DNA of 64,000 nucleotides from Macrostomum lignano (taxonomy: Eukaryota): contig NIVC01002566.1 in NCBI GenBank assembly GCA_002269645.1, forward strand, positions 97,205-161,204. The letters run 5' to 3'. Below the pieces are notes generated by a model. It was not told the origin of the DNA and searched no databases. It worked only from the letters and a program-made list of their open reading frames with translations. Shown in pieces: positions 1 through 63,280 of the stretch (within the stretch, counting starts at the first letter, position 1; the number at the start of each line of letters is the position of its first letter). Made by a program: the position numbers and the translations under genes.

Positions 1-14
1 TTCGAATTGCAACA

Positions 15-1089
15 ATGGTGGCTACTGAGAAGCTCATCTTCGTCTGCCTTCTGGTCATGGCGTCTCTCGCTGCTGCTGAGGTGAGCTGACACTTGGCAAG
101 CGTTTAGGTGAGGGGGGGCGGTTCGACTTTGACGGTGCTGTAGTGTCTTGAGCCCTGACATTGGCCACTGAACCAGCCCTGACAATGGCCACTGAACCAG
201 CCCTGACATTGGCCACTGAACCAGCCCTGACATTGGCCACTGAACCAGCCCTGACTATGGCCACTGAACCAGCCCTGACTATGGCCACTGAACCAGCCCT
301 GACAATGGCCACTGAACCAGCCATTACAATGGCCATAAAATTGCTGTCGCTTTTCCAGAAACTGGAATCGCCCGAGATAGAAGAGGAGGTTAAGGCTGTA
401 GACAGGCAGCGTCACAGGCACCATGGTCACCACCGTGAAGGCGCTCTGCCATCGAGCCGCCACCGCAGCCCCCACGGGCATCATGCTAAGCACGGACGGC
501 ACCACCACGCCAAGCACGGGTCCAACGTTGACAGACGAGCCGCCCTAGCCGACTTCAAACGCGCCGCCCTTTCGGACTTCAAACGTGCCGCCTTAGCCGA
601 CTTCAAACGTGCCGCCCTTTCGGACTTCAAACGCGCCGCCTTAGCCGACTTCAAACGTGCCGCCCTTTCGGACTTCAAACGTGCCGCCCTCTCGGACTTC
701 AAACGCGCCGCCCTAGCCGACTTCAAACGTGCCGCCCTTTCGGACTTCAAACGCGCCTCCCTCTCGGACTTCAAACGCGCCGCCCTAGCCGACTTCAAGC
801 GCACGCCCGGGCACCGCAAGCAGCACCACAGTCAGGCCAGCGAGAGCAGGATGTCGCACAACAAAACCAAGTCCCAGGTAAGTAGCACCAAAAAAGGTTG
901 AAAAAATCAATTTTACGCATATAACTGTCTGTGTATAGAACGGTCCTCTATTTAATTCAATTGATCATCATCCTGCAGTCTCACCACCCGAGAGACAGCA
1001 GCGGCAAGCGGTCCTACTACTGGGACGTCTGCAGCCACTGGATCAACGGTCGGGAGCGCCTCTACGTGTGCAAAAAGCAGATCCGTTAA
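15..1089 (+). CDS. Secreted multicopy neuropeptide-like precursor, 231 aa; exons 15-80, 359-877, 979-1089
   Basis: Exon 1 encodes signal peptide MVATEKLIFVCLLVMASLAAAE, then GTGAGC donor at 81. Acceptor ttttccAG at 358, donor CAG|GTAAGT at 878, acceptor ctgcAG at 978; all phase 0, giving a continuous ORF to TAA 1087-1089. Contains 11 hexapeptides (5 AALADF, 5 AALSDF, 1 ASLSDF) each flanked by KR/RR. Confidence 0.85.
152..335. repeat. 24-bp minisatellite (gccctgacattggccactgaacca), about 7.5 copies, in intron 1 of the precursor gene
   Basis: Direct tandem periodicity. In-frame TGA at 149-151 and the acceptor at 358 place it in the intron. Confidence 0.9.
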
Positions 1090-2180
1090 AGTTTGAAGAC
1101 TGACTGACTCAAGCGACTGTTTAGAGATAAATGACTGTGAGAGTTGACGGAGACAGGTGAGAGTTGGTTGAGAAGGCTAAATATAGTGTAAAAACAAGTT
1201 TATTATCGAAATTATAATTCCCGTCATGTGATTAAACTATAATCTTCAAAATCATAGAGCCGGTTTGGCAACTAAAAAATTTTTTTTATTATTATCTTCT
1301 CACATAATATTGTGATTCAGTTTTGTTTTAATTGTGACTTTCTGTTGTTTTATTTTAATCGGAATCATCGCTTGGCGAGAGTGATTTATTCACTTGTGTC
1401 CAATATTAACCTTGAAAGAATGTTTTGTCTTGTTTCAATTGTAATGCCGGTTGAAGGTAATAATATTATTTATTCAAACACCTTTTTTTCGCCATCAATA
1501 TAATCAAATCCGAAAGTTTGCTTTTGGTGAATCTTTTCTGTTTAACTAACTCGTCACTAAAACTTCTCTTCTTAATACACTGCGCTCCCAAGCAGAGTGA
1601 AACAAACAAAAGGAAATAAAACCGACCGACGTGAGTCTGCACCAGGACTCAATTAACCGAATCGCATTGGTCCCAAAAATGTAAAGTTTTATCAAGGTGT
1701 TGCTTTTATTGATTATTGGTCAGACGGCGATGTCTTCAATTAATTTCAACTCAAATCTCCACTTCCGATTTTAGAGATCTTCAAAACAGATTTCCAAGAG
1801 ATCATCTTCAGCAGTTTAATTTAACACAATTTATTTTATTTAATCTTTGATTAATTGTAAGTTTGCTTTAACAAAGTCGATTTGCATTGTCTTTCTACTT
1901 TGCCTATTGTTGCTAGCGCACTAGAATTGGGATTATTAAAAAGACAAAAATGACTCCCCGACATCTGTCTGTACTTTCTCTATTCATCCACTCTGTCTCG
2001 CTGCTTTTTGGCTTCTAAAACAAAATAGAAGGTGAGGACCGCATGACTGACAACTGGGAGATGAAAGGGATTCGATCCGCATGAATGATGTAGCTTGTTC
2101 CAGCGTATACCACCGGTTCTGATATCCTGCCTTAACAAAGAGATGACTGCAGCAGTTTCGGGAATTGCCAACCCCCACGG

Positions 2181-2598: not shown

Positions 2599-3519
2599 AA
2601 TAATGGTATCATCTCATAAAACAATAAAACATTCAATCATAGAACTTTAGGCACAGGTAAAATCAAGCAGTTTATAAAACTCGATAAGCAGCTGTGCTCG
2701 AAAAACTGCATGCTATACAAAGTTTACTATCCTTATTTCAATTTTCCCCTCCCCCAAATTTAGGAACAAACATTCATATACATGCACACGGGCAAGAATA
2801 ATGGATACAGAAGCTATAATACAACGCTTACGTCAAACCGATCGCATGACACAGCAGATGACGCTATCCCATCATCGGGAACCGCCCCCCACCGTCACCG
2901 GGCCTTCCTTACATTTCAATTGAGCCCTAAAATCCAGCTAGCTATAGAGAGAAAAGCCAAGCGAAACAAAGCATCAAAGAATGCGAGACAAACATGGAAG
3001 TCACCAGTCCAGGTTGGGATTAGATAGATAGATAGATGGGAGACACGATAAAAGGCATGGCTGCAAAGAGAAAGGCATTTCAAATAAATTTAGCAAAAGC
3101 CGTTGAATACTTGGGCCAGCAGCCAGAGCAGAAGAGAGACTGTATGGCTTTGGCCAGCTCAATGCAGTGAATGAGTTGGCAATTGTTGCTGTTGCCATTC
3201 TCCTCCACAAGCCATGGCCAACACACAACCGCCGCACCCAGTCCCACAGCTGGGAAACAACTCTGCTATTTCGGGCCATGGTTGAATAATTCAGAAAGGC
3301 AGAACGGCATTCTGCTCTGGTGGAGATGGGAGCTGGGAGGCTGCAGGTAGGAGAGGGAGGAGGCCAATGCAGCTCAACTAAAAGCTGAGAGGGATTTTTC
3401 AAGTTTGTTTTTTACAAACATTTTTTCTAACACTTCGTAGCGTTTGCGTGTGAGCTACTGATATACCTGTGTTAGTAGTATTTGAGGCTTTCGCTGAAAC
3501 TACAAAGGCTGAGGACGAT

Positions 3520-4187
3520 CTGAGACGCTGGCCAAGCAACTGAGGATCCAGGAGGCTGGAAGCCCAGCACCTGAGGATCTGGGAGGCTGGCCCAGCAACT
3601 GAGGATCTGAGAGGCTGGCCCAGCAACTGAGGATCTGGGAGGCTGGCCCAGCAACTGAGGATCTGGGAGGCTGGCACAGCAACTGAGGATCTGGGAGGCT
3701 GGCCCAGCAACTGACACTGGGAGGCTGGCCCAGCAACTGAGGATCTGGGAGGCTGGAAGCCCAGCAACTGAGGATCTGGGAGGCTGGCCCAGCAACTGAC
3801 ACTCTGGGAGGCTGGCCCAGCAACTGAGGATCTGGGAGGCTGGCCCAGCAACTGAGGATCTGGGAGGCTGGCCCAGCAACTGAGGATCCGGGAGGCTGGA
3901 AGCCCAGCAACTGAGGATCTGGGAGGCTGGCCCAGCAACTGAGGATCTGGGAGGCTGGAAGCCCAGCAACTGAGGATCTGGGAGGCTGGCCAAGCAACTG
4001 AGGATCTGGGAGGCTGGAAGCCCAGCAACTGAGGATCTGGGAGGCTGGAAGCCCAGCAACTGAGGATCTGGGAGGCTGGCCCAGCAACTGAGGATCCGGG
4101 AGGCTAGAAGCCCAGCAACTGAGGATCTGGAAGCTGGCCCAGCAACTGACACTGGGAGGCTGGCCCAGCAACTGAGGATCTGGGAGG
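3520..4187. repeat. 28/31-bp minisatellite (caactgaggatctgggaggctggcccag)
   Basis: Tandem units; reverse complement of the array at 43381-43778. Confidence 0.95.
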
Positions 4188-5365: not shown

Positions 5366-5452
5366 TGCGCAGACAAACTACTGAGAAAAAATACTCTACC
5401 TATTAATTTGCGAGTGACATATTTGTGGCATTGCTATACTAATCACAGGCTA

Positions 5453-5721
5453 ATTGTAACACGATATAAATGTGTAAAGCGTGCACTAAACACTAAAAGC
5501 ATTTAATGCACGCTAAAAGCGTGCTTAAATGGCTCGTGATCGCGTCTTGGCCGGAGTCATTTAATGCACGAGAAATATATATCGTGTTACAATACTACTC
5601 AATACTTGGTTAACACGTTTTAAATATAGGATTCAATACTTGGTTTTGAGTGCTTAAATGTCTAGGTCACGAGTGCGCGAAGCCGAGACTCAAAACCAAG
5701 TATTGAATATTATATTTAAAA
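5453..5721. repeat. Two adjacent inverted-repeat (MITE/foldback-like) modules: 5453-5593 and 5618-5721
   Basis: Perfect 16-bp IR attgtaacacgatata/tatatcgtgttacaat; 34-bp IR with 2 mismatches (5618-5651 vs 5688-5721). Confidence 0.65.
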
Positions 5722-6043
5722 CTACAATGCTTAAACGTTTGCTTTATTTAAGAATAAAGAAGTTTTATAGTTAAAGCTTTAAACAATTTATCTACTACTA
5801 ACCCCTGCTAATTTCATAAACTGCCGATATCGGAGCTATAATAAAAAGCCACTAAAAGCTAAAATACGACAGGTGCATAACTATAAACCAGTTCGAAGAA
5901 AAACGGAGAACACAATATACTTTAAAAAACGTCTCACCATGAGTTTATTTAGCTACAAAATTACCAAGGCCATTAACAGTACAATACCAACTCTTACTGT
6001 GTGCGCGTGTCTTTGTGACCCAAACAATCTAAATATAATTTAA

Positions 6044-7787
6044 CTAAGATTGGTCGCCGCGCACTTTGTCTCTGGCCGTAGTTGAAGTCGATCCGCCGCC
6101 GGCAACGGCTCTGTCCGCATCGGCACCAATCGAAGCGTTCATCGCTTCCAATTCGTCATAGAGAAAGCTTCTCAACCGGAGCAGGTACTGCGGAAACAGT
6201 TCAATATCGTTGTGGCCGGCGCCTTCAACCCACAGCGGGTCAACTGAGCGGGGCAGGCGCTCATAGATGGCCAGCCCGTGCGCGATGTTGATCACTTCGT
6301 CTTCTGTGCCGTGGATCACCAGGCAGGGAGAGTGGATTCTTGGCGCCTTCTCGATGCTGACGGCAACAAAATAGGGCGGGTTCGTTGAGGGTGGGATGGT
6401 CGATCTGTGCTTGAGGGCTTTTAAGCAGAAACAAGTTTATTTTCTGGAATTTAGCCATAGTGCTGAAGACAGACCCTGAAGCCACAGCCTCTAAAGCCAC
6501 AGCCCCTGAAGCCATTTCCTCTGAAGCCACAGCCCCTGAAGCCACAGCCCCCTCAAGCAATTTCCCCTGAAGCCACAGTCCCCTGAAGCCACAGTCCCCT
6601 GAAGCCACAGTCCCCTGAAGCCACAGTCCCCTAAAGCCACAGTCAGGGCCACAGTCCCCTGAAGCCACAGCCACCTGAAGCCACGGTCCTCTGAAGCCAC
6701 AGTCCCCTGAAGCCACAGCCCCCTGAAGCCATTTCCCCTGAAGCCACAGTCCCCTAAAGCCACAGTCAGGGCCACAGTCCCCTGAAGCCACAGTCCCCTG
6801 AAGCCACAGTCAGGGCCACAGTCCCCTGAAGCCACAGTCAGGGCCACAGTCCCCTGAAGCCACAGTCAGGGCCACAGTCCCCTGAAGCCACAGTCCCCTG
6901 AACCACATTTCCTGAAGCCACATCCCCTAAAGCCACGCCCCTTGAGGCCACATTTCCTGAAGCCACATCTCCTGAAGCCACAGCCCCTGAAAAACGGCCA
7001 AAGCAGCTCACTTGGGAAAGGCATCGAAGAACCATGTCCGGCTGGTGTCCGGAAAAGCCACCCTCAGTCCGGACAGCAGCGGGCTGTGCAGCACAACTCC
7101 TGCAGGGTTGACCCGGGTGGCCAAATCCACAGTTGGCACTGTGCCAATGGACTGGCCATAGAGTACAATCTCTCCTGGGGACAGATTGTACCTGCCAATC
7201 AACTGTTGCCAGGCGCAGTCAATATCGGCGTACAGATTCTTCTCGAGCGGCTGGCCAGTGCTGGCCCCGTAGCCTGAGTAGTCGTAGCTGAACACATTCA
7301 TATTGAGTTTACGGCCGAGATCAATGAGAAAGCCGCTCATTTGGCCCAGATCCACCGCGTTACCATGGGAAAAGAGCAGAGTGTACTTTGATCCTTTTCT
7401 AGAACGTACGGTACGAATCAGTACGCAAGCGATTGTGCTGCCTCTAGCCGTGTTGGCGGTGAAAGCTTCCAGACAGTCGGCCTCGTCCTCTGTGAGCTGC
7501 ATCGCTGGCGGGGCGGCGGCCGGATCTTCCATGTCTGGCGGATTAATCTGGAATCTGGGACTGTGCATGTCGCCAACTAGCGAGTAGGTCGGCCTGGGCG
7601 GCAGGAAGGCCAACTTGGCGGCGATGCGCGACGGTAACGGCGGCCAGCAGAACAGGCGGCAGAGGTCGCGGCAGGTCATGGAGGCGCCGCCGCCGCCGCG
7701 CGCCCCGGCGCCTTCATCCTCGTGAGGCACGTACTGACCGGCGGCCGCTGACGGCGCCGCTCCGTGGTGACGTTGGCGACTGGACAT
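6044..7787 (-). CDS. ABHD17: ABHD17-family depalmitoylase, copy 1, 362 aa; exons 7787-7012 and 6356-6044
   Basis: Motifs [27 protein letters not shown] (nucleophile Ser), HGTEDE (Asp), GAGHND (His). Phase-2 intron AA|gtgagc...tcag|C rebuilds DAFPNIEK. Confidence 0.93.
6474..6991. repeat. 16/28-bp minisatellite (gccacagtcccctgaa) filling the ABHD17 copy 1 intron
   Basis: Tandem units; same family as 10081-10561. Confidence 0.92.
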
Positions 7788-9263: not shown

Positions 9264-11261
9264 CTAGATTAAGCCTCTATGCTCGCAATCCACTGCTACA
9301 TCACCGTTTCCAATGTCTCCTCGACTGCCGCCGTCTCCAGTCTGCTTCTGGGCATCCCGCTGCTGTTGCTGCTGCTGCTTCTGCAAATGGTCCAATTCTC
9401 TATGTAGAAATGAGCGCAGCCGCTCCAGGTACTGCGGGAACAGTTCGATATCGTTGTGCCCGGCGCCTTCGATCCACAGCGGCTCAACAGCCGGCTGAGG
9501 CAGCCGATCGTGAAGGGCCAGGCCGTGAGCAAAATCAATCACCTCGTCCTCGGTGCCGTGAATGATGAGGCAGGGCGAACGGATTCTGGGCGCCTTCTCG
9601 ATACTGCGGGCCGATTGTGAAAGTTTTAGTTAGTACACGTGCACTTTAATTTCAAGTACTTTAAGTTCATATGTACTTCTAAATAAAAGTACACGCGCAA
9701 TTTTTAAGCCAGAATTTGCACATTGATCTAACAAAAGTACACGGTGAAACGTTATATTGACTATAGCATGTCACTGCTAAGGACAGCGAATTACTGTCTA
9801 AATCTAGGACACCATAACTATAAACTTCGCCCGTACTATTATGAACAAAGAAAGACTACACGCTCGCATATAAGATAGCGAAAGCGGGTTCAGTGAGGCG
9901 CCCCTGATCTTGCCTTCTAAGCCCAGACTGCCCAGTTATTAAGCGGAAAAAGCTGTCTAGCTGGATTATAGGCATAGAGAAGACGGCTAGCAAATATGAT
10001 GAATTTAAAATCACATACAGACTTGCAAAGTGCACTACATACGACTGTTCCAAAAAACTTCAATCCAATAGCAGTCTGATTCAAGCCACACCCCTGAAGC
10101 CACACCCCCTGAACCACATCCCCTGAAGCCACCCCGGGCCTGGGCCACAGCCCTTGAAGCCACAGACGCTGAAGCCACACCCCTGAATCACATCTCCTAA
10201 AGCCACACCCCCTGAACCACATTCCCTGAAGCCACACCCCCTAAACTACATCCCCTAAAGCAACACCCCCTGAAGCCACCCCCGGCCCTGGGCCACAGCC
10301 CTGAAGCTACAGCACCTGAAGCCACAGCCCTTGAAGCCACAGACGCTGAAGCCACATCCCCTAAAGCCACGCCCCTTGAGGCCACATTTCCTGAAGCCAC
10401 ATCTCCTGAAGCCACAGCCCTTGAAGCCACAGACGCTGAAGCCACATCCCCTAAAGCCACGCCCCTTGAGGCCACATTTCCTGAAGCCACATCTCCTGAA
10501 GCCACATCTCCTGAAGCCACATCTCCTAAAGCCACATCCCTTCAAGCCACAGCCCCTGAACAACGGAGAGCAGCTCACTTGGGAAAGGCATCGAAGAACC
10601 ATGTCCGGCTGGTGTCCGGAAAAGCCACCCTCAGTCCGGACAGCAGCGGGCTGTGCAGCACAACTCCTGCAGGGTTGACCCGGGTGGCCAAATCCACAGT
10701 TGGCACTGTGCCAATGGACTGGCCATAGAGTACAATCTCTCCTGGGGACAGATTGTACCTGCCAATCAACTGTTGCCAGGCGCAGTCAATATCGGCGTAC
10801 AGATTCTTCTCGAGCGGCCGGCCAGTGCTGGCCCCGTAGCCTGAGTAGTCGTAGCTGAACACGTTCATATTGATCCGTCTAGCTAGGCCAATTAAAAAGC
10901 TACTAATCTGACCCAAATCCACGGCGTTACCGTGAGAGAAGAGCAGGGTGTATTTTGACCTGGCGTGCGCCCCGGCGCTAACCATCATACAAGCTATTGT
11001 GCTGCCATTCGCTGTGGTGGCCAGAAATGCGTCTAGAAATCGGGATTTATCCTCGTTGGAGAATTGGAACTCGGCTCGGTCGCTCAGGTGCAATTGAAAG
11101 GCAGGCGAGGCAACCCCGTGACGATCTGCTGCCGAGGTAGTTGCGTCAGCGCTGGTCACAAGAGAATAAGTTGGCTCGGGCGGTAGGAAGGCCAATTTAG
11201 CGGCAATGCGGGATGGCAAAGGGGGCCAGCAGAACAGGCAGCACAGATCCGCGCAAGACAT
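9264..11261 (-). CDS. ABHD17: ABHD17-family depalmitoylase, copy 2, 340 aa; exons 11261-10579 and 9603-9264
   Basis: [15 protein letters not shown]-terminal Cys cluster, GQSIG, HGTEDE, GAGHND. Same intron position as copy 1 (AA|gtgagc...gcag|T). Confidence 0.94.
10081..10561. repeat. 16-bp-family minisatellite (gccacatcccctgaa variants) in the ABHD17 copy 2 intron
   Basis: Tandem units; shares unit variants with the copy 1 intron near the donor. Confidence 0.92.
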
Positions 11262-15807: not shown

Positions 15808-16720
15808 TTTATTCTGGTGCTTGACTGGGTGCTACGGACTGCTCTGCCTTCCAACGACGACGGCTTCCTGCTGCGGCGACGCGTGGGTCGACGCCAACCG
15901 GAGAGACGGCTCAGCGTGCTTGGCTACGCCGATGACCTCGCCCTGCTGTCCTCGACCGTCGAGGGCGCCCAACGACAGCTGGATAGGCTGGTTGCCGTTG
16001 CGGCGAGCGTCGGCCTGGTGGTCAACACGCAGAAGACCGTCGTGCTATGCGTGCCGGACGACACCGAGGCTGCAATCTTCTGCCGAGGCGCTGACGGACA
16101 GGCGAGTGAGCTTCCAAGATGTCAGCAGTTCGTCTACCTCGGCGGTCTGGTTCCCGACGTCCGCGAGGATCTGCGGCGTCGCCGAGGACTTGCTTGGGCT
16201 GCCTTTCGTTCTATAAGGTCAGTCCTGCAGTCCGAGGCCCTACCGGACCGCCAGAGGGCGGCGCTGTTCCAGGCGGTGATCGAGACCGTCCTGTTATACA
16301 ACGCCGAGACCTGGACGCTGACAGACTCGCTCGAGGCTCAAGTCGACGCGGCGCACGCTGGCCTGCTGCGCGCCGCCTTCAAGATCGGCAACGAGCGAGT
16401 CACCAACACGGCGCTCTATCATCGCGCCGGCCTGGCCCGTCCTAGCGATCTGCTGCGCCGTCGGCGACTCCAGCTGGCAGGCCACGTCATCCGCGCCGAG
16501 GCCTACTGTCCGGAGCCGGTGCAGGAGGTGCTGCTACTTACGTTGCAGGCACCCTACCGGCGGGGACAGGCGAAGACTCGGCGCTACGTCGACTGTCTGC
16601 TGGCTGACGCCGGCGCCCCGGACTCTGCCGGCGGTGCGGCTTTTGTTCGCGCCCAAGCTTTGAAGCGCGCCATCTGACGCTGCTTTTGTGAACTGGCAGC
16701 GTACTCTGTTGTTGTTGTTG
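15808..16720 (+). mobile_element. 5'-truncated non-LTR retrotransposon (RTE-clade-like), C-terminal part of the reverse transcriptase
   Basis: Uninterrupted frame FILVLDWV...LGYADDLALL...KT...FVYLG...LLYNAETWTL...AGHVIR to stop at 16677. (GTT)n tail 16707-16720; 10-bp TSD taagttacta (15796-15805, 16721-16730). Confidence 0.9.
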
Positions 16721-20700: not shown

Positions 20701-23700
20701 GTTGACGGCTTATAAATATAGGTGATACCACGGGGCCTGTGAGGGTTGCTTTCACAAACGCGAAATTTCACAACCGCTAAATCACCTACTTTCACAACCG
20801 CGAAACTTCATAACCGCGAAACTTCACAACCGCTATTTTTTTTGCAGTCACTTTCATAAACGCGAAACTTCACAACCGCTAAATCACTCACTTTCATAAA
20901 CGCGAAACTTCACAACCGCTAAATCACCCACTTTCATAAGCGCGAAACTTCACAAACGCGAAACTTCACAACCGCTAAATGTCATCTACTTTCACAACCG
21001 CGAAACTTCATAACCACTAAAAAGACTGCAGTATATGAAAGTATGTGCAAAATTTTTAGCGGTTGTGAAGTTTCGCGTTTATGAAATTTAGCGCTCATGA
21101 AAGTAGGTGATTTAGCGGTTGTGAAGTTTCGCGGTTGTGAAGTTTCGCGTTTATGAAAGTGACTGCAAAAAAGTTAGCGGTTGTGAAGTTTCGCGTTTGT
21201 GAAGTTTCGCGTTTATGAAAGCAAGTGCTTTTAGCGGTTATGAAATTTCGCGTTTGTGAAACCCACCCGCCTGTGATACCCTGATACGCTTCAGTGTGAC
21301 TGTGGTACCCTGATATGCTTCAGTGTGACTGTGATACCCTGATATCCTTCAGTGTGTGCCTGTGATACCCTGATATCCTTCAGTGTGACTGATACCCTGA
21401 TATCTTTCAGTGTGTGCCTGTGATACCCTGATATCCTTCAGTGTGACTGATACCCTGATATCTTTCAGTGTGTGCCTGTGATACCCTGATATCCTTCAGT
21501 GTGTGCCTGTGATACCCTGATATCCTTCAGTATGACTGATACCCTGATATGCTTCAGTGTGACTGATACCCTGATATGCTTCAGTGTGACTGATACCCTG
21601 ATATCCTTCAGTGTGACTGATACCCTGATATCCTTCAGTGTGACTGATACCCTGATATCCTTCAGTGTGTGCCTGTGATACCCTGATATCCTTCAGTGTG
21701 ACTGTGATACCCTGATATCTTTCAGTGTGTGCCTGTGATACCCTGATATCCTTCAGTGTGTGCCTGTGATACCCTGATATCCTTCAGTATGACTGATACC
21801 CTGATATGCTTCAGTGTGACTGATACCCTGATATGCTTCAGTGTGACTGATACCCTGATATCCTTCAGTGTGACTGATACCCTGATATCCTTCAGTGTGA
21901 CTGTGATACCCTGATATCCTTCAGTGTGTGCCTGTGATACCCTGATATCCTTCAGTGTGTGCCTGTGATACCCTTCAGTGTGTGCCTGTGATACCCTGAT
22001 ATCCTTCAGTGTGACTGTGATACCCTGATATCATTCAGTGACTGTGATACCCTGATATCCTTCAGTGTGACTGTGATACCCTGATATCCTTCAGTGTGTG
22101 CCTGTGATACCCTGATATCCTTCAGTGTGTGCCTGTGATACTCTGATATCCTTCAGTGTGTGCCTGCGATACCCGGATATCTTTCAAAGCGTGATCCCTA
22201 ATCGTTCAGGAGTGACATTGGGAGTGATACACCAGCGAAAATACACCTGGAGAAAATGCCTACCTGCACTAAAATCATGTTAAGAGTTGGAACTTCGTCG
22301 TCAATAAGGGCTGTTTTGTCCTTAATCATGCTGACTCGAACGCGAACAACGTCGCAAACAATCGAGAAAATACGGCAGTGAACTAGCAGCTTGTCTGTTC
22401 TGCTGTGGATGGTAGAAAATAGCCTGCTACTGAGAATCTTTCTAAACAGGCTAGACTCTTTGCAGGTCCATTCGCCGTCAAAGTGAGTGAATCCGCGCGG
22501 CTTAATCTCGGCTAGTTTGATTTCGACAGCCAACGGAGGGTACTCTCGCAGATTTTCGGGCATGCTGCATAATTCATTGACAAGCACGCTGCCAGTGTTG
22601 CCGTAGTCGATAAATCTGACTAGAATCTTGCCAGCCTGCGGCGCGCCGAGCACGCAGCAGCGATAATAGTCTCCTTGGTAGGGAGCCAAAGCCATGAGTC
22701 CGACAAATGGCTCACTACTCAATCGAGTTTTAGTGCAACTCTGCAGCTGATTTAGCATCTCGTGCTCCATGCCAAAGAAATCTTTCGGAATGCCGTAAAA
22801 GTGCCCAACATTTACAACATGTGTTGGTTCAACAAAAAAATTTTGTTCTGAACCAAGACATGCAAGCGGCGATTTCGGCCCATCATTAGCCGCACTGGCA
22901 GCGAGTCGGTCGGGCCTCTTGGAGTAGAACTCCTGCAAAACCGACATAAATTTGCTGCGCTGATTGGCATCCCGGTAGCGCAATCGAAAGACGGCCATTT
23001 TTCCGGCCTTCAGCGCCAGCAGTACCGACGGATGAATTCGGCCAACCAAGGAAGGCAGGCCGCAGGCCGTGTCAGGATTAGACTTGGCCTCGGTGTCCAT
23101 GACGTGCTCAACGTCGAAGCTGACAAAACATTTTGAATTCTCACTGGATACGCTAGGCTCGCCGAGCACTTTGTGCATGCAATATTTTTTAACTAAATCG
23201 GCCAATTGGCGACGATATAAATCGCCTTCGTTAAGCGGAAATCCGCTAAACATGACAGTATTGCTAGGATCATGGCCGGCAAACTCTTTACTGGCGCCGG
23301 TCTCTCCGTAGGCGGACGTGTCTCTAATAAAGAAATTTGGATAGAAGGCGCCAGCCAGTACGATCGGCAATAAAATTTTGTCAACTTCGTCTTGCGGTTC
23401 CTTGGCGTTGGCGCCTTGACGCGAATTGGTTGGACGAATGTTAAATTTTTCTAATCGGCGAAGCAAATCAGTGTGCAAACTTTCCACTTCTTTTAACGCC
23501 CTCGGATCAATAAATTTGGCCCGGCACCAGCGAATCACTTCCATATCGGAATGGAAAACGCCCGATTGGCGATTCTGTAGAAAATTCTTAAATGCGCTGC
23601 ACATTGCGACGCTGTCCGAGCAAGAGCCTTGTGAGTAGATTAGTTTTTCCTCAAATGAGTAGATAGCCTGGTCCGGCTGGAAATCGACAATAGGCCTGAA

Positions 23701-26700
23701 AAATAGGCTTTTACTACTGCTCATGCAAGCGCCAATGATCACTCCGTCTTCTAGGCAGCCAAAGATGAAGCTGAGCACAATCAGCTTGCCAACAAGAATG
23801 TCAACAGGTAGATGAGCAATTACCCGGCCTAGAAAAGTCAATTCGCCGTCAAAATGATCGGCAACATTGCTTGATAGAGCGGAAACAAGTTTCAATCGAA
23901 TAACACTTTCGGCAATTCTAACTGGCGACGGTGGATCGATAGCAGCGGTTAAGAAGCTTAACGGCGCCTCGCCCATGAGTTTCACTTTGAGAATGCAATT
24001 CTCAATTGGGCAACGAAGCATAGCTGACGGTTCAAACTCCTCTAATTCAGCATCAATCTCTGGGGTAATTAGCCGGTAACAAACGCCTGACTGTAGGCGA
24101 CCAGCGCGACCCGAGCGCTGCTTCAAGTTGCTTTTTGATGCCCAACCAACGCGTAGACTGCTCAGCGTTGAGTTGTCATCCTTGCACAGATACTTAGTCT
24201 GGCACAGGTCGATAACGTAAACAATGTCTTCAATGGTAATAGAAGATTCGGCTATATTAGTAGCGAGAATGACTTTGCGCTTAAATTCGTAGTTGTTGAA
24301 CGCTCTTCTCTGCTGGTCAGCGCTGACAGTCGAGTGTAGTGGTATTATCTCCCAATCGTGGGGATCGATGCCGACGCATTTGGACGGATCCTAGAAATTA
24401 AAAATTAAGCACGTCATGTAAGTTTATCAATTTTTTACTTTCTATAGAAATTCTACATAGTGCTTGTTACAAGCGGTTTGTTTTATAGTCATTGCATTTA
24501 ATTGAACCTTCCAATTTCGTGATTGTTAGTGGGCTAGCTGCTCTGGGTAAGAGTCTTTAGACGTAGAGCATATTCAGGGTACTGATGAGGGTTGCTAGCG
24601 AGACACCCAGCCATTGTTATGGCCATAGACATTTTAAGTCTTTGTAACTTATTGCTAGATTTACAAATCAGTTTATAAAACGAAACTCAACAGTTTGCAT
24701 TTGCATAGTTTTGGCCATAGACAATAGTAAACAACCTTTTACTTGCGCAACACTCGGCCGAGCCGGCCGATTAGCAAAAATACCCACCCAAAATGCGGAC
24801 ATCTTAATAATTAGATAACGAGTTATATAGCCTTAATAATACAGTCATAGTTACTCCTGCCGTTTACTTAAAACAGCATCAATTTTTGCTTACGTTTTTT
24901 AAGTAAGTCACACGACCGGTGTACTTTCGGAGGTTGCGCATGTATGTTTATTACTACAGCATAATTGTCTAATTTCTCTAGAATAAAAAAGTAATCTTAA
25001 ACTTTCTTGCATTTTAGAACTCTGCGACGCTTTAATATAAAAATTACTAACCTTGAGATAGTCGCTCAACGATATAATATCGTACAGTCCGGGTAGAAAA
25101 ACTAGCACAGCGCCAGAATCGAAGCTGGCTATTAATCTCTTAATTAGTTCCTTTTTGTGCTCGTTAATCTCAAAATCGTCCGGATCAACGTCCTGGGGAG
25201 TTAATCTGGGCAATTGAACATCGTTCTGCCTCGGCTGAACGTTGTTGACGCGTTCAATAGCGTCGTAATAATAATACGTCTCTACATCATAGGGCGCCTC
25301 GGAGACCCTAATAGTGTCCAAGGTGTCATCGGCCTTGTCGCTGCACAGGTAACGACGGATTTTTGCGTCATCCATTGTGGCGCTCATGACGACAAGCTTA
25401 GTTCCTGTTCCCGATGCGCCCATTAGCTGTTTGATAACTAATAGGCACATGTCCATCTCAAGGTCGCGCTCGTGCGCCTCATCTAGAATAATATGACTCC
25501 AAGAGTCTAGCCGCTTGGAGTGAATCAGCTTCTCCAGCAGGACACCAGTAGTGACGTACAGAATGCAAGTATCCTGGGATTGCTGATTATCTAAACCGAT
25601 TTGATAACCGCAACGGGCATTTTTGGCCCAATTTCTTTGCTTACAAATCCAATCCGACACTGAGACAGCGGCAATACGACGCGGCTGCGTAACAATAATA
25701 TTAACCGGCTGTTCCTTGTCAACGGCATTGTCTAGAATATACTGCGGCACTTGGGTACTCTTGCCGCAGCCAGTATTGCCTTGAATAAACACAATATCGC
25801 TGCATTGCAATGATCGCAATATGTCCTCTCTGTGCTGTAGAATTGGCAGCCGTTTATAACGGGCCGGATCCCATGGCAGGTCGCTGCTGCGCGTCACAAT
25901 TCTAGGCGCGGCAAGGCCTGAAGGCTGGGCCTCAACAATAGTGTGATTGGTTTGATCGCGCAAACTAGTGATATTAGTAAGGGTTTCCAAGGCGCTAATG
26001 CTGGCAGATTCTGGCCGGATTTGTTGCCGCTGAAACCGCTGCTCCCGCAGTTGTTGCTCGTATTCGGCGGCGGTTGGGCCGTCACTACTAGCAGTAGCAC
26101 CGCCATCTCTAGATGTTGCCGCGATGTTACGTGTGAGAACGTAATTATTTATGCCGAGCGATTCAACTTGTCTGACAGCCTGCAGTTGAGAAGTTCAAAT
26201 AGGAAACAAATTTAGCTAGAATTTCTACATCGACGAAGCCTAAATTTATGCTCGTAATAAATAAGAACACGATAAGTTGAATGATTAGAGAGTTCTCAGT
26301 GAAGGACCAGAGGGAGCCCAAAGAAGGATTAGAGGGGGCCCAGAGAAGGACCAGAGGAAACCCAGTGAAAGATCAGAGAGAATCCAGTGAAGGACTAGAG
26401 GGAATCCAGTGAAAGATCAGAGAGAATCCAGTGAATGATTAGAGAGAATCCAGTGAATGATTAGAGAGAATCCAGTGAAGGACCAGAGGGAATCCAGTGA
26501 AGCACCAGAGAGAATCCAGTGAAGCACCAGAGGGAATCCAGTGAAGCACCAGTGGGAATCCAGTGAAGCACCAGAGAGAATCCAGTGAAGGACCAGAGAG
26601 AATCCAGTGAAGGACCAGAGGGAATCCAGTGAAGCACCAGTGGGAATCCAGTGAAGCACCAGAGAGAATCCAGTGAAGGACCAGAGGGAATCCAGTGAAG

Positions 26701-43380: not shown

Positions 43381-43778
43381 CCTCAGTTGCTGGGCCAGCC
43401 TCGCAGATCCTCAGTTGCTGGGCCAGCCTCCCAGAGTGTCAGTTGCTGGGCCAGCCTCCCAGTTGCTCAGTTGCTGGGCCAGCCTCCCAGATGCTCAGTT
43501 GCTGGGCCAGCCTCCCAGATGCTCAGTTGCTAGGCCAGCCTCCCAGATGCTCAGTTGCTGGGCCAGCCTCCCAGATGCTCAGTTGCTAGGCCAGCCTCCC
43601 AGATGCTCAGTTGCTGGGCCAGCCTCCCAGATGCTCAGTTGCTAGGCCAGCCTCCCAGATGCTCAGTTGCTGGGCCAGCCTCCCAGATGCTCAGTTGCTG
43701 GGCCAGTATCCCAGATGCTCAGTTGCTGGGCCAGCATCCCAGATGCTCAGTTGCTGGGCCAGCATCCCAGATGCTCAA
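43381..43778. repeat. 28-bp minisatellite (ctcagttgctgggccagcctcccagatg), about 14 copies
   Basis: Tandem units; reverse complement of the 3520-4187 unit. Confidence 0.95.
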
Positions 43779-44221: not shown

Positions 44222-45925
44222 CCTTAATGCTCAAGTACCCCTTACTTGAAGCCTCTTTAAGGATTAGAGTCTCCTTAATGCTTAGAGTCTCTCCTTAATG
44301 CTTAGAGTCTCTCCTTAATGCTTAGAGTCTCCCCTTAATGCTTAGAGTCTCTACTTGATGCTTAGAGTCTCTCCTTAATGCTTAGAGTCTCTCCTTAATG
44401 CTTAGAGTCTCTCCTTAATGCTTAGAGTCTCTACTTAATACTTGGAGTCTCTCCTTAATCCTTAGAGTCTCTCCTTAATCCTTAGAGTCTCCCCTTAATG
44501 CCTAGAGTCTCTCCTTAATGCTTAGAGTCTCTATTTAATACTTAGAGTCTCTACTTGATGCTTAGAGTCTCTCCTTAATGCTTAGAGTCTCTCCTTAATG
44601 CTTAGAGTCTCTCCTTAATGCTTAGAGTCTCTCCTTAATACTTAGAGTCTCTATTTAATACTTAGAGTCTCTCCTTAATGCTTAGAGTCTCTCCTTAATG
44701 CTTAGAGTCTCTCCTTAATGCTTAGAGTCTCTCCTTAATACTTAGAGTCTCTATTTAATACTTAGAGTCTCTATTTAATACTTAGAGTCTCTCCTTAATG
44801 CTTAGAGTCTCTCCTTAATGCTTAGAGTCTCTCCTTAATGCTTAGAGTCTCTCCTTACTGCTTAGAGTCTCTCCTTAATGCTTAGAGTCTCTCCTTAATG
44901 CTTAGAGTCTCTCCTTAATGCTTAGAGTCTCTCCTTAATGCTTAGAGTCTCTCCTTAATGCTTAGAGTCTCTCCTTAATACTTAGAGTCTCTCCTTAATG
45001 CTTAGAGTCTCTCCTTAATGCTTAGAGTCTCTACTTAATCCTTAGAGTCTCCCCTAATCCTTAGAGTCTCCCCTTAATGCTTAGAGTCTCTACTTAATAC
45101 TTGGAGTCTCTCCTTAATCCTTAGAGTCTCCCCTTAATGCCTAGAGTCTCTCCTTAATGCCTAGAGTCTCTCCTTAATGCTTAGAGTCTCTATTTAATAC
45201 TTAGAGTCTCTCCTTAATGCTTAGAGTCTCTCCTTAATGCTTAGAGTCTCTCCTTAATGCTTAGAGTCTCTCCTTAATGCTTAGAGTCTCTACTTAATAC
45301 TTGGAGTCTCTCCTTAATCCTTAGAGTCTCCCCTTAATGCTTAGAGTCTCTCCTTAATGCTTAGAGTCTCTCCTTAATGCTTAGAGTCTCTACTTAATCC
45401 TTAGAGTCTCCCCTAATCCTTAGAGTCTCCCCTAATCCTTAGAGTCTCTCCTCAATGCTTAGAGTCTCTATTTAATACTTAGAGTCTCTACTTGATGCTT
45501 AGAGTCTCTCCATAATGCTTAGAGTCTCTCCTTAATACTTAGAGTCTCTATTTAATACTTAGAGTCTCTCCTTAATACTTAGAGTCTCTCCTTAATGCTT
45601 AGAGTCTCTCCTTAATCCTTAGAGTCTCTCCTTAATGCTTAGAGTCTCTCCTTAATACTTAGAGTCTCTATTTAATACTTAGAGTCTCTCCTTAATGCTT
45701 AGAGTCTCTCCTTAATGCTTAGAGTCTCTCCTTAATGCTTAGAGTCTCTCCTTAATGCTTAGAGTCTCTCCTTAATGCTTAGAGTCTCTCCTTACTGCTT
45801 AGAGTCTCTCCTTAATGCTTAGAGTCTCTCCTTAATGCTTAGAGTCTCTCCTTAATGCTTAGAGTCTCTACTTAATACTTAGAGTCTCTACTTAATGCCT
45901 GGAGTCTCTTCTTAATGCCTGGAGA
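44222..45925. repeat. 20-bp minisatellite (cttagagtctctccttaatg), about 80 copies
   Basis: Tandem units. Confidence 0.97.
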
Positions 45926-46000: not shown

Positions 46001-47047
46001 ACCTCAGCCATCGCTGCAGCAGTGGCCGCTGGCGGCTGCTGCCTTCTGACGTTTCTAATAATCCGTCGACATCAAAAGAACCGCCGGCGACTTCACGATT
46101 TGCCATCAGCACTGCAATCTGCAATACACAGCGACTGCGGCTTCAGTGGCGCCGGTATTGTGGTCACAGGCGCCGGGGCTGGCTTAGGCGCGGAGCTAAT
46201 TAAACACCTGTTAGGCACTAATTTGCCAGCTCTGATTGTGGGTACTAATAGGCCAATGCCCGGCTGTCAAGACTCTATTGAGGACAATCCAGACGAAGTG
46301 CTTCGACGTCTGTTTGTCGATTTTGGCGATGTGAAATCCATTCGACAATTTGCCGATCGTCTGACTGAACTGTTTCGTCAGCGAGGTGTTCGGTTGAGCC
46401 ATCTGGTTTGCAATGCCGGAGTCTTCTTTCCGGCCGAGCCGCTGTCGCGAGACGGTCTGCCAATGCATTTGGCCGTGAATTTTATTGCCAACGTGGAGCT
46501 TGTACGCCTGTTGCTAGGCAATGGCTTGTTAGAGCCGGGATACACCCGCGTATTGTTGGTGTCCTCTTCTCTTAGCAGTAGAGGCGTTGCTACGGAAGCT
46601 AGTACACTTATAGACGTTGCTAAGGATGTTGCTAAGGATGTTCCTAAGGATGTTGCTAAGGACGCCCGTGGGCTCAAAACTCAATCGTCTGCCGCACTCT
46701 ATGCAAATAGTAAACAATGTTTAAATTTGTTGGCTCAACATCTGCATAAAAATCTTGGCGTTCACGCTTGCGCCGCATTCACTGGCGGTCCAGTTGCTAC
46801 CAGGTTGCTACGGCCGCCATGGATACCCAGATTTTTACAAGCGCCGTTCCTATGGCTTTTATCGTTGGTATTTCAATCGCCAGAAGTGGTTGCTGCGGAT
46901 CTGTTTGGGCTGATGTGCCGCCCAGATGTGACTTCCGGTCGGGTCTACTCTGCCGGTCGGCAGGCCGACTGGCCGCTGGAACTTCCGGCTGATCGTTTGG
47001 CGGAGTTCGTCGCTGATTACGAGCGGCTGCTGATGAGAATTGAGTGA
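46001..47047 (+). CDS. Short-chain dehydrogenase/reductase, RDH11-14/WWOX-like, with an N-terminal membrane anchor; 5' start not in this exon
   Basis: TGAGAGLG Rossmann motif, CNAGV, SSS, YANSK (YxxxK). Hydrophobic N-terminus TSAIAAAVAAGGCCLLTFLII directly follows the acceptor ctctttccgtAG (45999-46000); no in-frame ATG before the Rossmann motif. Confidence 0.85.
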   Translation, partial: TSAIAAAVAAGGCCLLTFLIIRRHQKNRRRLHDLPSALQSAIHSDCGFSGAGIVVTGAGAGLGAELIKHLLGTNLPALIVGTNRPMPGCQDSIEDNPDEVLRRLFVDFGDVKSIRQFADRLTELFRQRGVRLSHLVCNAGVFFPAEPLSRDGLPMHLAVNFIANVELVRLLLGNGLLEPGYTRVLLVSSSLSSRGVATEASTLIDVAKDVAKDVPKDVAKDARGLKTQSSAALYANSKQCLNLLAQHLHKNLGVHACAAFTGGPVATRLLRPPWIPRFLQAPFLWLLSLVFQSPEVVAADLFGLMCRPDVTSGRVYSAGRQADWPLELPADRLAEFVADYERLLMRIE

Positions 47048-61696: not shown

Positions 61697-63280
61697 TTAG
61701 GGTCCATCATACTCAGCGCCATCGTTAGCCTCGCCAGCGGCCGAGCGCTGTCGCACCTTGTGCACGCTGATGCTCGGCTTGCCGCGCTCAGCGCCAGCGA
61801 TCGGCGTCAACTCACCAGTGACATCAGCGCTGCAGCCGTCGTACGCGACGCTGCTGTCGCCGCCTCCAACAGCGTTGATAGCCTGAATTGTCTCGTCGCT
61901 ATCGTCGCCTGAGAGATAGATTTTCAAGAAGCAGCAGAGCAACAGGAAGTGCACCCCGGCGTCCAGGCTGAAGACCATTCCAGGAAACATGTCCACGGTG
62001 GCGGCGTAGATGGGCGTAAACAGAGCCGGCCCGATCAGGTTGGCCAGGGCTTCCGCGCAGGATAGCAGCGAGAAAGTCTGACGATTTCCGCCTCGTCCAC
62101 CAGCTTGGAGGTCATGGATTTTGTGGCAGACACAATGAACCCAGCGAAGCAGCCGAGAACGGCGCTGGCAAACAGTAGCCACGTTTTCTGAGCAAGGCTG
62201 GTGATCACCAGGCGAATGATCTTCATCAGGAGGCCCACCATGACCAGAACGGAGTCGCGAGGCTTCATAAAACGCGTCAGCAGCGGCAGGATGAGCACAA
62301 GGTTGAGTCCCATGCAGGCGTAGTACACGGACAGATAATAGCCATAGTACTGACCTGGCCAGTTGAATGGAGCGTGCTCCACCAGCAACAAGAGCACGTC
62401 CTGCTCTCCTTGCTTGCAAATCTGGTTGACGCACAGGGAGACGAACAAGAACACGAGCATCAGCTGCTGGGGACGTCGCTGCAGTAGGAAGCCGATGGAG
62501 TCCCGCACAGAGAGGCTCCTGGTGGCGGTGTTCACACACGGACACGCCAGCTGAAGACAGCCGGCATCGTCAGAGGACTCCACGGACTCGACTACAAGCA
62601 GTACGATGATCAGCTCGAGCACTAGGTTGACAACCAAGATGACGATCAGCATGGAGTGGACGCTGCCGAAGCTCTGGAACACTCCGGTGAACAGGGAGCC
62701 CAGAAAGATGCCGAAGAAATTCATCGCCAGGAGGCGGCCAAGAAGCTCCGTTCGATCCTCGCGGCTGCTTGTGTCGGCCACGTAGCTGCTGCAGGCCATG
62801 GTCATGACCGTAGACTTGCCGAAGAAGCCGTACACAGTAGCACCGACCATCACCCAGACGAGAGTCGCGGCGCCTCCGACCGCGCTACGACAGTGAAGCA
62901 GCCGACAGCGAGAACAGCGCCAAGAGGAGGCAGCATCATCGGGTACTTGCGACCCACGCGGTCGCTCCACGATCCGGCGAACAAGCAGAAGAACACGGCC
63001 GGCAGGTTAAGCAGAATCCGGTACGCCAGCAAGTAGTTTGAGGCCTTCCGCTGCAAATCGTTCTCTTCTTTGCTGGTCATGCGACGCCGACCGATTGAGT
63101 GCCAGTCGCCTGGCTGCTGTGAGTCGCACACAGGCGGGGAATGCCCTCTCCCAGGCACACCTGCTGGTAGATGAATATCCGAATTGACGGCTGCAGCAGA
63201 CTCTCCGAGGCCTTGTAGAGAAAGAACACCAGCATCACCAGGTAGGACGAAATGCGGCGCTTAGCCGCGTCCGTCAGCAT
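61697..63280 (-). CDS. SLC46: Intronless SLC46/PCFT-like MFS transporter, about 528 aa, broken by three single-base (-1) frameshifts (assembly error or young pseudogene)
   Basis: Joined frames read VFFLY...IYQQVC...QRKASNYLLAY...GSWSDRVGRKYPMMLPPLG...SYVADTSSREDRTELLG...SKLVDEAE...IYAATV...FPG. Shifts at about 63137, 62883 and 62082; no premature stop on the homologous path. Confidence 0.8.

Follow-up and report, generated by a model that had tools for sequence, protein, structure and literature searches.

The described peptide precursors most similar to the gene analyzed here belong to an orphan spiralian family, listed by Thiel et al. 2021 (bioRxiv 10.1101/2021.03.03.433790, Supplementary Material 1) under the heading 'AxxxDF' and the name ASWLDF, for which we found no reported receptor in the literature. 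Its nemertean members carry the peptides ASWLDF, ASWLDM, ATWLDF and ASWIDT, while in the brachiopods Lingula and Glottidia the peptide AKFNDF is arranged back-to-back with KR as KRAKFNDFKRAKFNDFKR (Thiel et al. 2021). Position 6 of the family is Phe, but Met or Thr in some species. Linkers of the precursor, located between its dibasic sites, have been found as peptides by mass spectrometry in Lineus larvae (Thiel et al. 2021). No report of the family in flatworms was found in the sources examined. Here we analyze a stretch of 64,000 nucleotides (nt) from the flatworm Macrostomum lignano, referred to below as the window, which is identical to the corresponding DNA of contig NIVC01002566.1. Positions 15-1089 of the window, at the locus of gene BOX15_Mlig008925g1, hold a complete, expressed three-exon gene for a multicopy-peptide preproprotein of 231 amino acids (aa), most likely a member of the AxxxDF family.

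The coding sequence of this gene, all on the forward strand, is spliced from exons 15-80, 359-877 and 979-1089 (696 nt) and begins with a start codon in the context aacaATGG. Since each of the three exons is a multiple of 3, both introns are of phase 0, and their borders are canonical GT..AG: GAG/gtgagc and ttttccag/AAA for intron 1 (81-358), CAG/gtaagt and tcctgcag/TCT for the AT-rich intron 2 (878-978, 101 nt). Exon 1 encodes MVATEKLIFVCLLVMASLAAA followed by E, i.e. a predicted signal peptide (aa 1-21, 15-77) plus one residue. Exon 2 contains an N-terminal spacer (359-538) with the acidic start ESPEIEEE, which then becomes His-rich and closes with RR (533-538), an array of 11 back-to-back hexapeptide+KR units (539-802), and the start of a basic, His-rich C-terminal spacer, TPGHRKQHHSQASESRMSHNKTKSQ (803-877). 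Exon 3 encodes the end of this spacer, SHHPRDSS-G-KR (979-1011, with the Gly-Lys-Arg site at 1003-1011), and the C-terminal peptide SYYWDVCSHWINGRERLYVCKKQIR (1012-1089, comprising the peptide at 1012-1086 and the stop codon at 1087-1089). An earlier note on this DNA, made from the sequence alone, had proposed just this layout of signal peptide, acidic/His-rich spacer and dibasic-flanked copies on three phase-0 exons, and it is borne out both by the translation and by comparison with databases: the 231-aa product matches the M. lignano entry 'hypothetical protein BOX15_Mlig019341g1' of NCBI (P0002) with 100% identity from end to end. As the NCBI models of the M. lignano assembly were built from a genome-guided RNA-seq transcriptome with StringTie, TACO and TBONE (genome paper), the junctions 80/359 and 877/979 are indirectly supported by transcripts.

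The same gene is represented in UniProt by older models with assembly frameshifts or fusions (P0003, P0004, P0005 and P0011), and the names given to it in databases so far are 'hypothetical protein' and 'conserved secreted protein'. Neither Mlig019341 nor Mlig008925 occurs in the text of any paper searched or in the supplements of the genome paper that were examined, and the 231-aa protein, its paralogue (see below) and the Lineus precursor have no Pfam family at E<=1. A second, near-identical locus on NIVC01002999.1 differs by one indel in an intron, one synonymous change (CGT>CGC) and a few changes in the 3' untranslated region, which is consistent with the duplicated-chromosome redundancy known for the DV1 assembly. 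An abhydrolase gene (331 aa, opposite strand) lies downstream on both NIVC01002999.1 and the window contig, and an ankyrin-repeat gene lies upstream of the NIVC01002999.1 copy (compared with window positions 1-1215). The product annotated at BOX15_Mlig008925g1 itself (P0001) has 207 aa and only 8 copies, i.e. 24 aa less than the 11-copy protein encoded by the DNA. We considered a splice isoform and rejected it, as 90 different 72-nt deletions could yield P0001 and none of them has GT..AG ends; the 207-aa product more likely reflects a collapse of the transcript or an allele with another copy number.

The list of open reading frames (ORFs) conceals this gene, as the earlier note had correctly pointed out: ORF 161..901 fuses a repeat of intron 1 to exon 2, and exons 1 and 3 are missed. 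This repeat is a minisatellite at 151-335 (24 bp, 7.7 copies, 95% matches according to Tandem Repeats Finder), the period of which equals that of the coding array. The frame of exon 2 stays open throughout it and gives MATEPALT repeats, for which reason ORF callers merge intron 1 with exon 2. By eye we saw no convincing similarity between the intronic repeat and the coding unit.

Translation of the array (539-802) unit by unit gives the 11 in-frame 24-nt units that the earlier note had counted: five encode AALADF (starting at 539, 587, 635, 707 and 779), five AALSDF (563, 611, 659, 683 and 731) and one ASLSDF (755). KR closes 11 of 11 units, RR precedes the first, and Gly stands before KR in 0 of 11. 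Tandem Repeats Finder calls the array at 535-802 with periods 24, 48 and 72, and the motif GACTTCAARCGNGCC is seen 10 times, versus 0.01 expected in shuffled sequences. Seven of the 24 unit positions are variable among the copies, five of them synonymous (Leu codons CTA/CTT/CTC/TTA, the third base of the Ala/Ser codon, AAA/AAG and CGC/CGT) and two leading to Ala/Ser exchange. Within the array the proportion of synonymous differences (pS) is 0.344 and that of nonsynonymous differences (pN) 0.053, i.e. pN/pS is 0.15 (Fisher P = 0.003); a binomial test of the silent changes against the 26% that are silent among random changes gives P = 0.016. It weighs against these values that few sites enter the synonymous/nonsynonymous test and that the copies are related to each other through higher-order duplications of 48 and 72 nt; with such small numbers and shared ancestry we regard the test as supportive, not conclusive. 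As judged from the coding sequence, selection acts on the peptide at the protein level, as had been suggested from the codon variation, and the hexapeptides are the selected product. An open-frame minisatellite would be uninformative alone, because 23% of the window consists of tandem repeats (27 arrays). It is the coding evidence, and not the open frame, that sets the hexapeptide array apart.

The paralogue supports selection on the peptide more strongly than the test within the array. It was found in M. lignano as residues 73-262 of UniProt A0A1I8IA06 (P0010), inside a fused model of 900 aa named 'Inhibitor_I29 domain-containing protein'. Compared with the window gene, its signal peptide is 39% identical and its spacers 34% and 40%; one isolated copy followed by RKR precedes 9 back-to-back copies. 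All of its hexapeptides (10/10) are AALADF, AALSDF or ASLADF with dibasic flanks, and over both M. lignano genes 21 of 21 hexapeptides fit A[AS]L[AS]DF. The peptide after the last KR is partly kept (SYYWDVC…NGRE in the window gene versus QLYWDIC…NGEE in the paralogue), and the spacers have remained rich in His (15-37%; 8/55 and 10/27 residues). Precursors of bioactive peptides usually evolve in this way, with spacers that drift while the peptides and their cleavage sites stay constant. No counterpart of the paralogue was found in the NCBI protein set of Mlig_3_7, where it may thus be unannotated, nor did a tblastn search find it within the window.

The assignment to the AxxxDF family is based on the peptides and on the architecture of the precursor. 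We carried out a HMMER all-against-all scan (1.84 billion representatives) and filtered the matches for KR-flanked short peptides. The HMMER output was mostly composed of spurious 8-residue periodic repeats, and the filtered matches yielded the ASWLDF precursor of Lineus longissimus (P0053, NCBI LOC135500346). Because unrelated 8-residue repeats score equally well or better, the E-values were not used as evidence of homology. The features in common are the hexapeptide length, Ala1, Asp5 and Phe6 (11/11 copies here, 10/10 in the paralogue), a hydrophobic residue in position 3 (Leu here, Trp in nemerteans, Phe or Val in brachiopods), a signal peptide, a large number of copies, and KR (or KK) flanks without Gly and without amidation. 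In the window gene the copies stand back-to-back, as in Lingula and Glottidia. The Lineus gene, which we mapped on the chromosome (exons 3001-3087, 5380-6015 and 6284-6367 of L003, both introns of phase 0), is built like the window gene, with the signal peptide in exon 1, all copies in exon 2 and a short tail in exon 3. The earlier note had described the peptide as apparently novel and unlike any named family; this claim fails, as the hexapeptides match the KR-flanked, non-amidated, multicopy AxxxDF family of Thiel et al. 2021, a Lineus member of which was recovered by the scan, and the exon layout matches that of Lineus. Since the peptide motif, the flanks, the arrangement of copies and the exon layout agree, we file the gene as the flatworm representative of AxxxDF; true orthology of the M. 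lignano gene with the family we would call probable, with the reserve that a comparison of such short motifs demands.

Additional support comes from two uncharacterised precursors of ASW[AS]DM peptides in environmental and SRA assemblies, P0061 (JGI/IMG) and P0109 (Logan SRR22388065, L004), which possess a signal peptide and 5-6 back-to-back KR-flanked hexapeptides. ASWADM and ASWSDM alternate between Ala and Ser at position 4 in the same way as the Macrostomum peptides and have the same Ala1 and Asp5, but differ in Trp at position 3, Met at position 6 and a C-terminal tail …KQLA.LA… common to both precursors. At the level of the motif they bridge AAL[AS]DF and ASWLDF, and they are probably further, so far unnamed members of the AxxxDF family.

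Several points weigh against the assignment. The match to AxxxDF amounts to three fixed positions of a hexapeptide and a general architecture, and no similarity was found outside the paracopies, the alignment being invariant only at the A, K-R-A, D and K-R-A of the repeat. The 8-residue KR periodicity inflates HMMER E-values, and unrelated repeats (e.g. MVRAMLHD) score better. The layout of three exons and phase-0 introns carries little weight when taken alone. Positions 2-4 are unlike (AL[AS] in Macrostomum, SWL in nemerteans, KFN in brachiopods), and the repeated peptide here has no Trp. The spacers are His-rich and basic in Macrostomum but acidic in the nemertean and brachiopod members. The nemertean tail ALGSWIEAK...IKVIREMLLKDK has no counterpart in the window gene, in which a two-Cys peptide takes its place; as the brachiopod sequences also lack the tail, we regard it as nemertean-specific and not as family-defining.

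These differences could also be accommodated if the gene were a genuine multicopy precursor invented in the Macrostomum lineage, with an A-x-x-x-D-F pattern convergent with nemertean and brachiopod ASWLDF, and thus the founder of a new family. The absence of similarity beyond the hexapeptide, the contrast between the spacers and the ease with which short peptide motifs converge would all be in line with such an origin, and no orthologue in other flatworms emerged from any search (e.g. the strings DFKR, ADFK and SDFK are absent from the planarian prohormone supplements of Collins 2010). We nevertheless consider independent invention unlikely, given that the peptides agree in length, in the first residue, in the hydrophobic position 3 and in the terminal Asp-Phe, that Lingula likewise has its copies back-to-back between KR sites without Gly, that the ASW[AS]DM precursors bridge both motifs, and that the exon layout and intron phases equal those of Lineus. 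Divergence of spacers, moreover, is normal for proneuropeptides, and those of the Macrostomum paralogues are themselves only 34-40% identical.

Irrespective of its family, the protein very likely works as a convertase-processed multicopy precursor of signalling peptides, to judge from its generic features: a signal peptide, 11/11 copies bounded by dibasic sites, conserved peptides, and a small size (231 aa) without any domain. The predicted signal peptide comprises an n-region with Lys6, a 12-residue hydrophobic core LIFVCLLVMASL with a Kyte-Doolittle 11-mer mean of up to 2.95, and A-A-A at positions -3..-1 (AAA/E). This sequence of exon 1 starts all Macrostomum models, two of which are called 'secreted protein' in UniProt. 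In the regulated secretory pathway PC1/3 or PC2 cleaves after RR/KR, and carboxypeptidase E removes the basic residues; G-KR is the canonical signal for cleavage plus amidation in PAM/PC processing. In the scheme that we propose, the signal peptide (aa 1-21) would direct the precursor into the secretory pathway, a prohormone convertase would cleave after RR82 and each KR, and a carboxypeptidase would trim the basic residues, releasing 11 free-acid hexapeptides with predicted [M+H]+ of 607.31 (AALADF), 623.30 (AALSDF) and 639.30 (ASLSDF), which would most likely carry signals between cells by way of a receptor. A homologue of PC2 in M. lignano (RNA815_2403.2) has a nervous-system pattern in in situ hybridisation, and its knockdown by RNA interference (RNAi) is lethal (PMC4490696).

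The C-terminus of the hexapeptides should stay a free acid, because no Gly precedes KR. The earlier note had pointed this out for the hexapeptides, correctly, but it overlooked a candidate amidation site, DSS-G-KR, with its G-KR at 1003-1011. It also passed over the conserved Cys-containing C-terminal peptide SYYWDVCSHWINGRERLYVC-KK-QIR (1012-1086), in which two Cys stand 13 residues apart and KK occurs internally. The motif YWD[VI]C..NG.E, with KR-x-x before YWD, is common to the window gene and the paralogue, and the two-Cys peptide may be a second bioactive product. The proposed processing would probably also yield peptides from the His-rich spacers and, from the C-terminus, SYYWDVCSHWINGRERLYVC looped by a disulphide; it may further yield ...PRDSS-NH2 with an amidated end.

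The composition of the spacers fits the interpretation as a signalling-peptide precursor less well. His accounts for 14 of 61 residues of the N-terminal spacer (359-538) and for 6 of 36 of the C-terminal spacer (803-1002). Proneuropeptide spacers are normally acidic; such His-rich, net-basic spacers are atypical of proneuropeptides and differ from the acidic linkers of the nemerteans and brachiopods, which weighs against the interpretation. That their His-richness survives the divergence of their sequence suggests that the spacers have a role, and metal- or pH-dependent sorting into granules or a histatin-like activity are possible. The same observation would suit a non-neural gland product, for instance a polyprotein that serves as a pheromone or in the seminal fluid, a component of adhesive or mucus, or a host-defence precursor with histatin-like His-rich segments as its active parts, processed by a furin/Kex2-type protease or not at all. 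Repeat polyproteins cut by Kex2 are familiar from outside nervous systems, e.g. the fungal alpha-factor, and the neuronal link of the gene is one that we infer. We regard a gland product as improbable, since the strictly conserved part of the protein is the hexapeptide with KR and not the His-rich parts, structural and adhesive domains are missing from this small protein, and its nearest relatives by motif are annotated proneuropeptides from neuropeptidome screens, with dibasic processing confirmed by mass spectrometry in Lineus larvae. The reading as a signalling-peptide precursor is thus preferred, with 'neuro' and 'cleaved', like the signalling function and true orthology, being what we infer from the sequence.

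That the array might be a neutral minisatellite in an open frame and the gene model an annotation artefact can be dismissed as highly improbable: the window is rich in tandem repeats (23%, 27 arrays), the adjoining 24-bp intronic repeat is likewise open in frame and the annotated 207-aa product of the locus disagrees with the DNA, but an RNA-seq-derived model equals the predicted 231-aa protein, both introns have canonical splice sites, the predicted signal peptide is good, the copies vary mainly at synonymous sites, identical peptides are kept by a paralogue whose flanks have diverged, and these peptides match a described peptide family.

In the entire window (1-64000) the 27 arrays of tandem repeats have periods from 2 to 257; the genome-wide content of tandem repeats is 15% (M. 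lignano genome paper). They include a 20-bp unit repeated 82 times at 44270-45918 and a 28-bp unit present in opposite orientations at 3517-4187 and 43382-43777. Neighbouring exon-sized ORFs with Pfam matches are located on the reverse strand at 7008-7787, 10575-11261, 22198-24126, 24908-25990 and 62035-62970, and on the forward strand at 15817-16677 and 46022-47047. Their families comprise two tandem alpha/beta-hydrolases, a short-chain dehydrogenase, an MFS transporter and a reverse-transcriptase fragment, as well as a Tudor domain beside a DEAD/DEAH helicase, in a TDRD9-like arrangement. None of the Pfam matches of the neighbouring ORFs has a relation to peptide signalling.

The gene itself has been public but unnamed. 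No paper was found that names AALADF, a string present in none of the papers searched, or ties Macrostomum to AxxxDF, McVeigh 2009 and Koziol 2016 lying outside the search. Its identification is useful as annotation and of modest evolutionary interest, and it does not reveal a new type of system. If the gene is filed with AxxxDF/ASWLDF, an orphan spiralian peptide family would extend to Platyhelminthes. M. lignano is transgenic and RNAi-tractable, and very few of its neuropeptides have been named so far; if the gene is a member of the family, the species would be an organism in which the function of the peptides (by RNAi and reporter lines) and their receptor could be tested, synthetic AALADF and AALSDF being trivial to make.

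Outside the AxxxDF family we compared the gene with several other known peptide systems. The string AALSDF occurs in the Aplysia apALNP peptide SYADSKDEESNAALSDFA and in a hepatitis B virus (HBV) paper, and both are chance occurrences. Pedal peptides and orcokinins, of which the free hydrophobic C-terminus had reminded the earlier note, are alike only in being multicopy, non-amidated and hydrophobic at the C-terminus; they have 13-20 residues with an N-terminal xFDxIG and a C-terminal GF (Lineus examples), motifs absent from the six-residue peptides here, and the suggested likeness does not hold. The WLD proneuropeptide of Platynereis (PMC3890597) is also multicopy, non-amidated and lineage-restricted, with Cys-containing end regions, and earlier work, cited by Conzelmann et al. 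2013 (PMC3890597), established that the WLD peptide influences the beating of cilia. As a relative it was rejected, since its peptides are of 10-11 residues (WLDNSQFKDED) with KK flanks, the motif is N-terminal, and there is no A-x-x-x-D-F.

The AWDF and LWDY peptides of acoels and nemertodermatids, confirmed by liquid chromatography-tandem mass spectrometry (Thiel et al. 2018, PMC6188537), are likewise non-amidated and multicopy, end in Asp plus an aromatic residue, and have dibasic flanks. They differ in the Trp-Asp-aromatic core, which is absent from AAL[AS]DF, and in that the acoel copies (GMAWDF) are split by acidic linkers. The resemblance to acoel AWDF noted earlier is thus correct for the C-terminal Asp-Phe but not for the core. 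No sequence homology between AAL[AS]DF and the acoel peptides has been shown, Asp-Phe being all that they have in common, and Y-W-D-V in the C-terminal peptide of the window gene recalls the acoel WD core. Tentatively, AAL[AS]DF could be viewed as the first platyhelminth member of AxxxDF which, together with ASW[AS]DM and perhaps acoel AWDF/LWDY, might mean that signalling by short free-acid '…D-F' hexapeptides is ancient in spiralians or even in bilaterians. The Macrostomum precursor would then also supply His-rich peptides that bind metal or sense pH, and a YWD[VI]C peptide looped by a disulphide.

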